A stretch of 64,000 nucleotides of DNA from Rebecca billardiae RCC1528 (GCA_965240325.2 OZ251226.1:1922001-1986000), one strand, 5' to 3'; shown: positions 54,994 through 60,721, numbered from the stretch's first letter. Program-made: numbers and translations. Notes: a model not told the origin generated them from the letters alone.

Positions 54994-56919
54994 TCATGCA
55001 CTGAGCCCAGCGATAGAGTCAGCCTTGTCGACGCCGTAGTACGAGATGCGAGGGTCGCGCCCGCCACCACCGGGTGCGGCGTCGTGCGGGCCGCTTGACT
55101 CGTCAGCGAGCGTCAACTTGAGCTCGGAGAGCGTGTCGGCGGGCGGGTCGTCCTCGGCGGGTGCGGCGGACGCCGAGCGCGCGAGCTCGGCTTTCGACGG
55201 CTGACGCACGGCGGAGTGCTGGCGGGCGTGCGGCGACTGCTCGACTTGGACGGTCACGGCGGAGTTCTTGCGCGAGCGCGCGTCGTTGAGCGCCACGCGC
55301 ACGCGCGATTCGAGCACGGCGCACTCGCCGGCCGCCGCGGCCTCGAGGCAGCTGCGCAGGTGGTCGCGATGCTTCACGAGCGTGCACTCCGCCTTGTCCA
55401 CCGCGAGCTGCTCGACCGCGTCACCGCCGCCGGGCAGCTCGCACACTTCGATGTCGGCTGCGCTGAAGTCCAGCTCCAGCGCGGTCAGCATCTCCACCAG
55501 CGTCCACAGCCGGCCGGTGAACGACGGGCCGAGGAGGACGAGTACGCTCCGGCAGCCTCCGATGCGCTCGGGCAGGTGTGCGAGCGCCTCGCCGATGGGC
55601 TGGCCCTGCTCGACGCACACCTGGTCCAGCCTGCACGCGCGGCGCGCGCGCGGCGCGCGCGGCGCGCGGGGCGGCACGGCGGGGTGCTCAGCGCGTGCGC
55701 ACGCCGGCGAGGCCCGGGGCTCGCGCCTCGAGCCGGCGCGCCCACGCGCGCCGCGCGCCCGGCCGCGCGTGCGCGCGCGCGCAGCAACACACCACACGAC
55801 GGGCTCGCGGCCCGTCTTGGCGCGGAACGAGGTGCGCCACGCCTGCAGGGCGCGCCACTTGGAGTCCAAGTCGTCGTGGCTGCTGTGCGAGACGTAGGCG
55901 TCCACCTCGCCGAACCGGACGTCCTTCAGAATCGACGCCGAATTCTTCCGCCCCGCCGGGCTGTTCCTCCGCCCTGAGCCGCCCTTGGGCTCCAGCGGCG
56001 GCCCGCCCACCACGCCGCCGAGCTGCGTGCTCGCACGCCTCGGGTCGAGGTGGCGCTTCTGCAGGCTGGCGAGCGAGACGCCGCGCAGCGCGAAGGGCTC
56101 GGGCTCGTCCGCGGGGGGCGGCTTGGGGGCGAGCGCGACGAGCGTGATCGCCCTGAGCGAGACGCGCGCGCGCCTCGCCAGCCGGTGCGCCACCAGCCAG
56201 GAGTTGGGCTCTGTGGGGACGAGCAGGGCGAACGCGAGCTCGGCGGCGCCGCGCACGAGATGGATCGCGCCCAGCGGCATCGGCTCGAGGGGCTCGGCGT
56301 CGAAGACGAGCATGAGGACGGCGGCGGCCAGCCTGGTCAGCCCGATCCCGGCACACACGCCGCGCACGGCGCGCAGCGTCGCGCGCCGCGTGCCGCTCGG
56401 CCGGCCGCGGCAGCCTGCGAGCACAAAGGTGAGGGCGACGGCGACGAGCGCGATGATGGCCGCCGCGGCGCTGCGGATGGTGTCGAGCATGGGGAGGGTG
56501 AGCGGCGCGCCGCTGCCTGCCGTGAGCCATGCGTCCATGTCCACGGCCCCGCCCGTCGCGAGCATCAAGTCCAGGGCTGCCAAAGCCAGGACGAAGATGC
56601 TGACGGCAGCGGCCATGCCGTACGGGAGCACGCGGTCGCACGGCATGACCGCGCTCGCCATGAGCCACAGCGCCGAGAAGCCGAGGACGAAGTTCGCGTA
56701 GAGGGCGAGGTGCATCCAGATCACGGCCAATCCGGCGCCGTCGCTCGCGGAGAACTCGCGGGCGAAGCGCGGCGAGATGAGCAGGACGGCGATGGCCGGC
56801 GCAATCATCATGCCACCCAGGACGAGAAGCGGCGCCTGCACCAAGCGCCGCACGCGCTTCCTCGTGTTGTGTGCGGCTTTGAGCCGCGCATGTATCTCGG
56901 CCTCTGCGGTGTACACCAT
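54994..56919 (-). CDS. multi-pass (~6 TM) membrane protein with C-terminal TIR_2-like domain (intron 55631-55792)
   Basis: Spliced DAYVSHS...VWLDQVC...IGGCRSVLVLLGPSFTGRLWTLVEM matches TIR betaA, betaB, betaC and alphaC (WxxxE). Confidence 0.75.
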   Translation of the reverse strand: MVYTAEAEIHARLKAAHNTRKRVRRLVQAPLLVLGGMMIAPAIAVLLISPRFAREFSASDGAGLAVIWMHLALYANFVLGFSALWLMASAVMPCDRVLPYGMAAAVSIFVLALAALDLMLATGGAVDMDAWLTAGSGAPLTLPMLDTIRSAAAAIIALVAVALTFVLAGCRGRPSGTRRATLRAVRGVCAGIGLTRLAAAVLMLVFDAEPLEPMPLGAIHLVRGAAELAFALLVPTEPNSWLVAHRLARRARVSLRAITLVALAPKPPPADEPEPFALRGVSLASLQKRHLDPRRASTQLGGVVGGPPLEPKGGSGRRNSPAGRKNSASILKDVRFGEVDAYVSHSSHDDLDSKWRALQAWRTSFRAKTGREPVVWCVAARARTRGRARGARGRAGSRREPRASPACARAEHPAVPPRAPRAPRARRACRLDQVCVEQGQPIGEALAHLPERIGGCRSVLVLLGPSFTGRLWTLVEMLTALELDFSAADIEVCELPGGGDAVEQLAVDKAECTLVKHRDHLRSCLEAAAAGECAVLESRVRVALNDARSRKNSAVTVQVEQSPHARQHSAVRQPSKAELARSASAAPAEDDPPADTLSELKLTLADESSGPHDAAPGGGGRDPRISYYGVDKADSIAGLSA

Positions 56920-57076
56920 GACGACGACGCCGCGCGCCCGTCAGATGGCGGCGACGCCCACGAACGCGTTCACAACGCTCGTCGACCGGCGACGTTGATG
57001 ACTCTTGGCGGACCAATTACTACTACTAGTAAAACCGAGTCAGGGAACTCGTCAAGCGTCGCAGGGGTGCCGGGCG

Positions 57077-57108
57077 TGAGGATTCTCCGACGCATCGGAG
57101 AATCCTCA
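57077..57108. repeat. perfect 14-bp hairpin
   Basis: TGAGGATTCTCCGA-CGCA-TCGGAGAATCCTCA. Confidence 0.85.
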
Positions 57109-57330
57109 TTTACGGGCTACGGCGAAACGAGCGAAAAAGCGCCCGAAAATGCCCAAACTCTATAGAAGATTGGTATAGGAGTCGTAACCGCTCACAGGTG
57201 GCGTGTACTCCCTTCATTGTTCATTGACGATTGCTACTGAGTCAACGTTGGTAAGGTATGTCTCAACAATGATCATGTCTCACGGTTTGGTTTAGCCCTA
57301 AACCAGGGACTCCCGGGGCGATCCAAGCCG

Positions 57331-58396
57331 AGGCCACTCGAGCGACTTCGTGTCTGGCGAGGCAGATCGCGCCAGTGCGTGGCGAGGCAGACGCTCGCCT
57401 GCCTCGCCGCTTGGCGAGGCAGCTAAGCTAGTAAAGCCAAGGGGGTAAAGCCGCGGCCGAACTTTACGAAAGCCATATGTCTGCCGGTGCGCCGCCCGTC
57501 TTTTGCGCACGGTGACAAGGGCGCGCGAGGGCGCTTCCTCACGATCCCGAAGAGCGCTGCGCGCGGCGTCGCGTTGGCGGCGGCAGCGGCGCTGGGGTGT
57601 ATCTTGCCCATTCTGCGTGGCGGCGCGCTCTCATGACGCCTCGGCCGCCGCCACGCCATGCGCGACCGGGCGTGTCGCCTTCTTGACGGGCAGTGCACAC
57701 GCCCTTGCAAGCGCACAGCCGTGAAGAGCCGAGAGCGTCCGTCGCGAGCACGCCGCCCACGCGGGATGCGTTATGTCGTCACCGAAGCCACCTTGCGCAT
57801 GCGCTTCGCCGAGTTCGCCATGCGTTCAGAGCAGTCAAGATCACTGAACGAGAGGATGTCATCGGCTGAAATGCAGGTTAGCAGTGCTCATCATAGCTGC
57901 TACCCATGGTCATCCTGGCTCGCACATGCCAGAGCGCGAGCACCCAGTGTCATACGAATAGCCCTGGCAACGCATCCCGCGTGGGCGGCGTGCTCGCGAC
58001 GGACGCTCTCGGCTCTTCACGGCTGTGCGCTTGCAAGGGCGTGTGCACTGCCCGTCAAGAAGGCGACACGCCCGGTCGCGCATGGCGTGGCGGCGGCCGA
58101 GGCGTCATGAGAGCGCGCCGCCACGCAGAATGGGCAAGATACACCCCAGCGCCGCTGCCGCCGCCAACGCGACGCCGCGCGCAGCGCTCTTCGGGATCGT
58201 GAGGAAGCGCCCTCGCGCGCCCTTGTCACCGTGCGCAAAAGACGGGCGGCGCACCGGCAGACATTTGGCTTTCGTAAAGTTCGGCCGCGGCTTTACTAGC
58301 TTAGCTGCCTCGCCAAGCGGCGAGGCAGGCGAGCGTCTGCCTCGCCACGCACTGGCGCGATCTGCCTCGCCAGACACGAAGTCGCTCGAGTGGCCT
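57331..58396. repeat. long inverted repeat / fold-back palindrome 3
   Basis: Arms 57331-57772 and 57969-58396 are near-identical reverse complements (one 14-bp indel); CAAGCCG occurs on both flanks. Confidence 0.95.
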
Positions 58397-58922
58397 CAAG
58401 CCGTTTCCCGTGAGCGGCCGAGCAAGCGCATGGCTGCCGTTGTGGGGCGCCGTGGGCGACAACATCTTGTCCAGCACGGCGCCGAGAGCCCACATGCATC
58501 GGTGGAGAGGGGCTACTGTAGTCACGTCGCGTACCATCCCATCACACCATACTGGTGGGCTTGAGCCGACATCTTGCGCGCGCATGAGGCCGTATGTTCG
58601 TGCGGGCTGGTTGGCACAATCATGGGCGTTGCCGTTCGGCTTCAAACGTGCAGGCGGGGTGAGGTGTAGCACCGCGAGGCGAGGGGGACTGTGTTGGGGG
58701 ACATGTCGGTAAGGCCCTAGCGCGCACTCCACCCGCTCTGCTTTGTCATTACGTGTACTACGTAGTCCCAAACTACCCGCTCTGGGCGCCGCGCGAGGCC
58801 GCGCGCCCTTCGGGAGCCGCGCCGGGGCGGGTGCGCCTCTCCCGGCCGAAAAAATCGTTTCACGGACTCACCAGCACGGCCGCTCGCGAGCGGCGGCGCA
58901 TGCAAAGGCCGATCAGTGGGCC

Positions 58923-60721
58923 ATGGGCGACTTCCGCGGCCTCTTCGGCGACGACGCTCCGCATGAGGGGTGCAGCATCACGCAGCCGGAGGAGCGCGGC
59001 GTCACGCTGCAACAGCTCCGCCGGCTGGCCGCGACCGCCGCGGACGCGAGCAAGACCCTGCACGACGTGCTTAATGACGTTATCAAGCCTGCGACGCAGC
59101 AGCGCAAGTGCTCGCTCGTCGAGCTGGTCGCCACGAGCGCGCAGCGCCCCCAGTGGTTCGTCGTACACTTCTACGGGACTCCGATGGCGGATCTTCTCGC
59201 TGCACTGTCGCAGCATGCCACGGATCACAGCCTGGGCGAGGACACGCCGTACTGGCTGTGTGCCTGCGCGCTGAGCCCGCACGGTGGTGGGCAGCCGCTC
59301 AGCGGCGCGACGGACACGCTGCCATTCGTGCAGGCGCTCAAGGCGGTGCAGGGCGTGGTGAGCGTGATCGACCGCGAGGGCGAGGCGCTCCAGCGCGCAT
59401 GGACCGGCTTCGAGCTGTACCTCGCCTTCACCACGCGCGGGCGGAGTCTCCTCCACGACATCTACGCCGTCGCGGGCGACCAGGACAAGCCGGTCGGGCT
59501 GGTTGACGGCTATGCGGCGATCGACAACGGGCTGGCCGAGCTCAAGGCGGTGCGCGAGAAGCACTTCCCGGAGGAGCTCGCGCTGCGCGCGACGCGATAC
59601 GCGCTCGGCGGGGCGCGCACCACGGTCTGGCCTGAGCGCGCGCGCATGCTCGAGCGGCTCGGTCCTTCAGTCGCTGAGCTGGACGCAACCGTGCGCGCGC
59701 GCTTTGGCTGCGTCGTGCTGCCGCGGCTGGCGCAGCGGGCAGCGGACGAGACGAGCTCGCCCGAGCTGCGGCTGCGCGAGGCGCTCGCCGCGCTGCGCGT
59801 CTCGCACATCCGCAAGGTCGTGCTCCACGAGGTGCCCGCGCCGCTGTACGCGTCCGCGCTCGGGGGCGCGCTGCCGCGCGTGCTCGAGGAGCTCGAGCTG
59901 CTCGGGGTGCACGCGAGCGTGCTGCCGGGCGTGGTCGAGTGCATCCGGAGCGCGCCGCTGCGGCAGGTGATGCTGCTGCGGTGCGGCATCGGGGACAAGG
60001 AGGCTGCCTCCCTCGCCGATGCGATCGCGAGCAGCACCGCGCTGGAGGCGCTCAACCTCGAGTGCGCGCACACGCGTCCGCGCACACCCGCGGAGCTGGC
60101 GCGCGCTGCTGCGCCCTCGCGCGCGCGCGCGCTGCCTGACTGCCGAGCCGAGCGCCCATGCCATCTGCCCGGCCGCGCGCGCGCGCAGCCAAAACGCGAT
60201 TTCGGACAAAGGCGTGGCTGATCTCGCGCGGGGGCTTGAGCGCAGCACCTCTCTCGTCTCGCTGACGCTGCGGTACGCGCGCGCGGGCGTTTCCCAGTGC
60301 GCTCGCGGGCAGCCCTGCCTGCGCGCCCAGCCTGCGGCTGGGCCGGCTTGGACGTGCGCCCGTGCTAAGGCCCCGACCCTTCCCCGCGCGGCGCGCAGCC
60401 TCAACCAAGTTCGCGACGCGGGCGCGCAGGCGCTGGCCGGTGCGCTTGCGCGCAACAGCGCGCTCGCGAAGCTGAATCTCAGGTGCGTGCGCATCCACAT
60501 CTGTGCCGCGCCTCGTACCGCTGCCGCTGAGGAGTGTCAGCGCTGCGCGATTACGTGTAGCGCACTCACCTACTTCGGGCGGCCGGGCCACCTTGCTCGG
60601 CGATGCGACTGCCTCCCGCCGCAGGTACAACAAAGTCGACAAGGTCGGCGTGAACGCCCTTCGCGAGGCGTGGGCGGCGTCCGGACGAGCCAACGAGACA
60701 CTCAAGCTCGACAGCGTGTGA
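58923..60721 (+). CDS. TIR-like N-terminal domain + RI/NLRC3-type LRR protein (introns starting 60062, 60273, 60483)
   Basis: PQWFVVHFYG...YWLCACA...RAWTGFEL; spliced LRRs LNLDQNAISDKG, LTLRLNQVRDAG, LNLRYNKVDKVG; 84-nt repeat exons. Confidence 0.75.

Follow-up and report, generated by a model that had tools for sequence, protein, structure and literature searches.

Do two divergent genes of the alga Rebecca billardiae RCC1528, each with a TIR-like domain and separated by a long palindrome, form an immune module, or are they neighbours by chance? Both lie in the window, a 64,000-nucleotide stretch (C8:1922001-1986000) of a 72-Mb, 41-contig assembly (G+C 55-78%), and positions are counted from its first letter unless a contig is named. 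A sequence-only reading of the window had described a co-regulated receptor/effector pair, possibly controlled by the hairpin between its members. The four elements on which it built (two genes, their divergent orientation and the palindrome) were all found, and the start codons of the head-to-head genes 1 and 2 are 2003 bp apart, in line with the earlier estimate of about 2.0 kb. We favour another account of the locus: gene 1 and gene 2 are probably independent members of large, lineage-expanded families with TIR/HET-like domains, coincidental neighbours with a transposon between them.

Gene 1 (54994-56919, minus strand) is a member of what we call family A and combines a membrane block with a C-terminal TIR/HET-like domain. 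It was analysed as a contiguous read-through open reading frame (ORF) of 641 aa, intron included. A Kyte-Doolittle scan (window 19, threshold 1.6), which is a crude method of membrane prediction, gives six hydrophobic segments (residues 31-49, 63-91, 102-120, 152-170, 188-206 and 216-234; positions 56218-56829, minus strand), with a basic stretch, KRVRRL, ahead of the first. The domain carries the motifs DAYVSHS, W/LDQVCVEQ and GRLWTLVE, the slash marking the place where a 54-codon Arg/Ala-rich stretch follows VVW and precedes LDQVCVEQ. Because this stretch is bounded by GT (55792-55791) and AG (55632-55631) and is missing, exactly between W and (L/I)D, in all 20 aligned paralogues, it is, as judged from the sequence, an in-frame intron of 162 nt (55631-55792). 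Exon 1 then spans 55793-56919 and exon 2 spans 54994-55630, with the stop at 54994-54996, and the spliced product would have about 587 aa. Since WLD forms only on splicing, the in-frame intron makes the earlier description of gene 1, about six transmembrane helices followed by DAYVSHS, WLD and RLWTLVE, correct in all its parts.

Family A has at least 95 loci in the genome, found by a domain search of the assembly; the locus counts of this family and of the gene 2 family are lower bounds. We built two family-A profiles, A1 from 21 copies and a larger one, A3. In public data clustered at 50% identity, A1 finds 5514 clusters at E <= 1e-3 and 1130 at E <= 1e-30. WxDxxCxx(Q/P) is kept in 145 of the 150 best public matches and (R/K/Q)xWxxxE in 149 of the 150. 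Upstream of the domain, each of the 92 matches with a full N-terminus has one hydrophobic segment or more, and 91 have two to six; the joining of a membrane block to a family-A domain is therefore a common algal architecture. The Trp and Glu of WxxxE (Trp 55504-55506 and Glu 55492-55494 in gene 1, minus strand) are invariant in A1, as W149 and E153, and in A3. The ESM Atlas neighbours of family A are unnamed haptophyte clusters, and a search of IMG/VR returned no viral relatives.

Some family-A proteins have an added C-type lectin domain (L023:148-2583:- on contig C30, P0004 and P0067; Pfam Lectin_C in L023, E 2e-9). The closest paralogue of the C-terminal half of gene 1, L022 (C13:2301723-2304929), has lost WLD and the Trp of WxxxE, reading QVHCVVE, though the Glu is still present; this copy may be degenerate, or regulatory.

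Gene 2 (58923-60721, plus strand) belongs to a second family, B, and joins a TIR/HET-like domain to leucine-rich repeats (LRRs) of the ribonuclease inhibitor (RNI) type. Analysed exon by exon and spliced by eye, it runs from the ATG at 58923 to the stop at 60719-60721 and encodes 467 aa in four exons (58923-60061, 60189-60272, 60399-60482 and 60625-60721), with introns that are all GT..AG and in phase 2. Exon 1 contains WFVVHFYG, YWLCACAL and QRAWTGFELY. The two middle exons, 84 nt each, encode one 28-residue RNI-type LRR apiece, as does the start of the last exon. Together with these three, which were read by eye, about five to six units lie at 59808-60718. The protein is homologous to its paralogues from residue 3 on. 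Its ORF piece in the window gives a weak match (E 0.048) to Pfam LRR_6, a model of 28-29-residue repeats reading LxxLxLxxNxIxDxGAxALAxAL, and LRR_6 is found at E 1e-17 to 1e-37 in family-B paralogues and in the homologue from the pavlovophyte Diacronema lutheri. In the PDB, the family-B profile, A2, picks out ribonuclease inhibitor and the GALA LRR proteins (E 2e-4 to 4e-3). The motifs FVVHFY, YWLC and RAWTGFE that had been noticed in gene 2 are thus borne out, and the LRRs noticed there are plain to the eye. Borne out as well is the lack of an NTPase module: Pfam scans of either gene returned no NB-ARC or NACHT domain, and the AlphaFold2 (AF2) model of gene 2 passes from the TIR-like domain through a helical linker directly into the LRRs.

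Family B has at least 26 loci. Its canonical members read WFVSHWWGEP, YW(V/I)CAYAxxQH and RAWCxFELY and continue into long arrays of RNI-type LRRs. W160 and E164 of its WxxxE (Trp 59400-59402 and Glu 59412-59414 in gene 2, plus strand) are nearly invariant in A2. Both families are thus multi-copy, with the Trp and Glu of WxxxE invariant or nearly so, which places the motifs of the two genes beyond chance. Among named proteins, gene 2 is closest to a hypothetical protein of D. lutheri (36-44% identity). A match of PF27087 to that homologue was considered as an N-terminal domain and rejected, as it is another LRR family. A metagenome search returned no orthologues of gene 2, and an exact-protein look-up found only a 2.5-kb contig from a public read set, 100% identical to the window. 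ESM Atlas neighbours of family B are unnamed diatom, haptophyte and green-algal clusters.

Are the two domains related to each other, and are they TIR domains? With hhalign, family B aligns to family A over 158 collinear columns that begin at the first strand and extend to the C-terminal helices (95.3%, E 2.3e-8), and to the smaller A1 profile at 88.6%. On this profile evidence, families A and B are homologous through the same distant TIR/HET-like domain.

For the fold we compared AF2 models with 48,161 solved chains using VIA-align, a comparison independent of Foldseek. The gene 1 domain (modelled segment 55285-55950, minus strand, intron read through; built on A1) has a predicted local distance difference test score (pLDDT) of 78.8 over its whole length, rising above 90 once the intron loop is left aside. 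All of its top 17 matches are TIR domains (Z 9.3 to 7.2), among them RPP1 (Z 9.3, 129 aa, root-mean-square deviation (rmsd) 3.4), SARM1 (8.4), ThsB (8.3), RPS4 (8.2) and MyD88 (8.1); nucleoside deoxyribosyltransferases and SEFIR follow. The gene 2 model is confident (pLDDT 86.6, predicted template-modelling score 0.88), and its domain (residues ~74-265; 59142-59717, plus strand) has TIR domains as all of its top 8 matches (Z 7.5 to 6.0), with RPP1 first (Z 7.5, 133 aa, rmsd 3.5) and SARM1 and RPS4 at 6.4. In the gene 1 model the Glu of WxxxE is placed after betaC, early in alphaC. Models and profile alignments together point to a TIR fold with WxxxE at the place of the catalytic Glu in both proteins, as the sequence-only reading had proposed, less strongly for gene 2. 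The profile homology between the families is a stronger argument for the gene 2 domain than its modest Z values.

Several comparisons tie the sequences to TIR, each of them weakly. A1 matches the TIR domain of TLR15 (E 0.004), with DAFISYS on DAyvsHS, WCQYEL on LWcvvEl and Glu on Glu. The homologue P0006 matches Pfam TIR_2 along 108 of 122 positions (E 1.7e-4, 22.5 bits, cut-off 28), and own-genome loci with the motifs FLDRLCIHQ and ERLWCIFEL reach 26.9 bits, also below the cut-off. When family A is aligned to nine canonical TIR_2 domains from this genome, the alignment is collinear and its conserved Glu falls on their invariant one, though E is a marginal 0.019. Two loci of the FLDRLCIHQ/ERLWCIFEL subtype, L062 (C10:2307580-2308011) and L063 (C23:52104-52529), have hydrophobic stretches on both sides of the domain; this subtype may bridge the gap from canonical TIR_2 to family A. 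The genome further holds about ten canonical TIR_2 domains that pass the Pfam cut-off, encoded in ORFs of 369-1869 aa (for example C13:293189-293515 and C5:1949398-1950210), and two loci carry a tandem pair.

Several results weigh against TIR membership. Neither gene, nor any of five family-A paralogues, gives a Pfam TIR, TIR_2 or HET match above threshold, and the gene 1 protein and those paralogues have no Pfam match. The larger A3 profile finds no TIR match among PDB sequences, so that the TLR15 match of A1 is not robust, and the hhalign comparison of family B with canonical TIR_2 is not collinear and is meaningless. For gene 2, a Z of 7.5 falls, by the tool's own caution, within the range that can reflect a common arrangement. 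Foldseek divides the two genes: its best matches for the gene 1 domain are the plant TIR domains of RPV1 and RUN1, at an E of only 0.04, whereas for gene 2 the Toprim cores of DnaG outrank TIR (E 0.02), an ambiguous result. The HET family does no better as a profile: a Pfam HET scan of the genome reaches at best 17.6 bits (E 0.17, cut-off 22.5), only over the WxDxxCIDQ block, and family-A homologues match HET at E 0.12-0.39. We therefore call the domains TIR/HET-like, since the fold and the Glu at the catalytic position are there and membership by curated profile is not. TIR membership is not proven, and TIR-like is the most that can be claimed. As regards fold, both domains very probably belong to the TIR superfamily.

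What might the two proteins do? Gene 1 would encode a six-helix membrane protein with a cytosolic C-terminal TIR-fold domain bearing Trp-x3-Glu, and gene 2 a soluble protein with a homologous, more diverged N-terminal TIR-like domain, C-terminal RNI-type LRRs and no STAND NTPase. On the analogy of TIR proteins, a cue may be sensed by the part that varies (the membrane block in one, the LRRs in the other), upon which the TIR-like domains would oligomerise and either cleave NAD+ around the Glu into a signal or serve as a scaffold for partners. That both domains are NADases, as the same analogy suggests, is possible, though we hold it with some reserve. Many eukaryotic TIRs, including an algal clade with haptophytes, keep the Glu and make isomers of cyclic ADP-ribose (10.64898/2026.04.20.719644), and in the haptophyte Gephyrocapsa huxleyi, TIR genes that Pfam can detect show a response to virus infection and resistance (PMC12489294).

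The strongest competing explanation is that the domains are non-enzymatic, acting as interaction or death-fold-type scaffolds or as HET-like death domains that do not cleave NAD+. The WxDxxCIxQ block resembles a motif of fungal HET, a death domain that is only remotely related to TIR and whose mechanism is unknown (PMC10890737), and weak HET matches occur (E 0.12-0.65). Several animal TIRs, TLR2 and IL-1R9/10 among them, keep the Glu yet show no NADase activity (preprint 10.64898/2026.04.20.719644), and a conserved Glu is therefore no guarantee of activity. Gene 2 has, in addition, lost residues conserved in its family, with SHWWGEP changed to VHFYGTP and CAYAxxQH to CACALSPH. The conservation of WxxxE speaks the other way, as an active site under selection would be expected to give it: its Trp and Glu are unchanging in both family-A profiles, nearly so in A2, and retained in all but one of 150 distant homologues. 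Moreover, the best structural matches include the active NADases SARM1, ThsB, RPP1 and RUN1. We consider a purely non-enzymatic role unlikely, though it deserves to be kept in mind.

The altered motifs of gene 2 also suggest a second alternative, in which it is a short TIR-like-LRR paralogue in decay, on the way to becoming a pseudogene. With 467 aa and about five to six LRRs it is small beside the other family-B loci, whose open frames span 465-1711 aa and mostly exceed 600 aa, and its versions of the family motifs are degenerate. However, its frame is open across all four exons with canonical splice sites, the phase of the 84-nt LRR exons is preserved, every invariant column of A2 is retained, and the model is confident. 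The relaxed motif variant is shared by L004, L011 and L012, which suggests a subfamily rather than decay. Decay is accordingly improbable, and gene 2 is, on the sequence comparison, a short family-B member with relaxed motifs common to a few paralogues.

Is the head-to-head arrangement more than coincidence? Among the 95 family-A and 26 family-B places, the window holds the only A-B pair within 5 kb, so that one of 26 family-B loci has a family-A neighbour at that distance. The chance expectation is 0.34 such pairs, with P(>=1) = 0.29, and in the next nearest A-B pairs the members are separated by 13, 39 and 46 kb. Two caveats on the chance figure are its assumption of uniform placement and its use of locus counts that are lower bounds; higher counts would raise the expectation further. 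The family-B locus of D. lutheri, which is not orthologous, has no family-A domain within 10 kb and no synteny with the window either. Hence the adjacency claimed for a co-regulated pair matches chance given the family sizes, an outcome that the earlier reading had itself named as refuting its proposal, and no such pair is seen at the D. lutheri locus. Family-A loci do form local duplicates, 3-5 kb apart (C11:494137-494271(-)/C11:497824-497958(+), C14:199091/203732 and C12:125088/130414/133258), and in the C11 pair (L019 and L020) the duplicates are inverted and divergent and have the same domain sequence; A-A clustering therefore exists, though A-B clustering does not. The H-NOX loci of the genome overlap neither family's list of matches and may carry a further subtype. 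The genes flanking the two here encode a TPR protein and a GT90 glycosyltransferase, and the locus is therefore not an immune-gene island. The head-to-head placement of gene 1 and gene 2 is most likely coincidental.

A co-regulated sensor/executor pair of NB-ARC-less TIR-like proteins with a bidirectional promoter, in the manner of RRS1/RPS4, would nevertheless fit some features of the locus. The genes are head-to-head, only about 930 bp of non-transposon DNA lies between their ATGs, and their homologous domains are joined in one case to LRRs, as in a sensor, and in the other to a membrane block. The chance-level adjacency, the distance of the next pairs and the D. lutheri locus speak against this model, which we regard as very unlikely, and we see equally little prospect that gene 1 and gene 2 are functional partners. 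A specific form of the pair, in which a cytosolic TIR-like-LRR receptor without a STAND NTPase would act on a membrane TIR-like partner through heteromerisation or an NAD+-derived molecule, both expressed from a shared bidirectional promoter, has a slighter probability still; if true, it would be a minimal algal immune module of an undescribed kind.

The palindrome is explained without reference to either gene. It is an inverted repeat of 1068 bp (57330-58397), with arms (57330-57772 and 57969-58397) that are 99-100% complementary and a loop of 196 nt (57773-57968). Among 120 candidate places, at least 40 full-length copies with 93-98% identity are present on many contigs. In all six copies checked, a perfect 5-bp duplication flanks the element, its sequence differing from copy to copy (AAGCC in the window, at 57325-57329 and 58398-58402), and the termini, GAGGCCRCTCGAGCG, are identical in all six copies inspected. 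The palindrome is thus a DNA transposon, young and non-autonomous, whose terminal inverted repeats are long. Copies of this foldback-type family, of which L046-L050 were also inspected, measure 1054-1068 bp with arms of about 430 bp, and, compared with the others, the copy in the window carries 14 inserted nucleotides in its left arm. The 2.5-kb public contig that matches gene 2 starts 29 nt inside the element end, where a repeat would be expected to interrupt assembly. The element would have inserted recently into what had been an intergenic region of about 930 bp. Because it is one copy of a dispersed transposon with target-site duplications, it is not a locus-specific control element, and the role of controller given to the hairpin by the earlier reading falls away. 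That it is a regulatory hairpin specific to this locus and controlling both genes is extremely improbable: it does lie between the start codons, at distances of 410 and 525 bp from them, but the near-identical copies elsewhere have their own duplications, and any effect on expression would be a side effect.

The interest of the locus lies in its domains, divergent TIR/HET-like modules that escape Pfam, are hugely expanded in an alga and are joined to membrane blocks, lectins or LRRs. Among named clusters, the nearest to family A come from haptophytes, diatoms and green algae. Should the domains prove to be active NAD+-processing enzymes, Pfam-based counts of algal TIR genes greatly understate the repertoire, which may act in defence against viruses and bacteria or in cell death of bloom-forming phytoplankton. 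A receptor made of a TIR-like domain and LRRs, with no STAND NTPase, would be of simple design. The idea of a pair-plus-hairpin module adds nothing to the significance of this expansion.

Compared with known systems, the element between the genes resembles foldback and long-terminal-inverted-repeat transposons akin to miniature inverted-repeat transposable elements in its terminal repeats of about 430 bp, short loop, many near-identical copies and target-site duplications, and it shows no plausible coding capacity in the ORF listing. The 5-bp length of the duplications is the one clue to its superfamily. The genes recall the paired plant nucleotide-binding LRR receptors of the RRS1/RPS4 type, which are also divergent and also have related TIR-fold domains; here, in contrast, NB-ARC and an integrated decoy are both absent, and among paralogues the pairing does not recur. 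The TIR genes of G. huxleyi (New Phytol 2025, PMC12489294) come from a haptophyte, some are membrane-anchored, and the intracellular TIR keeps the catalytic Glu. They differ in being defined by Pfam TIR models (HHsuite probability >=50%), which the families described here escape, and in being reported without LRR or NBS partners, whereas family B has LRRs.

Three collinear blocks of the domains, (S/T)(H/Y)xW, WxDxxCIxQ and RxW(T/C)xxE, resemble blocks of fungal HET (PF06985), both kinds form large lineage-expanded families, and the C-terminal lectin domain of some family-A members has a counterpart in the HET-lectin protein Bh of Podospora (PMC10890737). The matches to HET reach only E 0.12-0.65 over about 20 residues, however, the host is an alga, and the partners are membrane blocks or RNI-type LRRs. 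Compared with TIR domains (PF13676/PF01582; SARM1, RPP1/RPS4/RUN1 and ThsB), the domains described here fall below every Pfam TIR threshold, have a conserved WxDxxC(I/V)xQ block after betaB that canonical TIRs lack, and carry an extra conserved C-terminal helical part (F.V..A.C...D..LL..IE...G...FN). They agree with TIR in the predicted order betaA-alphaA-betaB ... betaC-alphaC, with the Glu early in alphaC, in a block of hydrophobic strand, S/GxxY/F and xxWCxxEL that aligns with the TLR15 TIR and with TIR_2 of the same genome, and in the use of the domain as a module joined to sensor parts.

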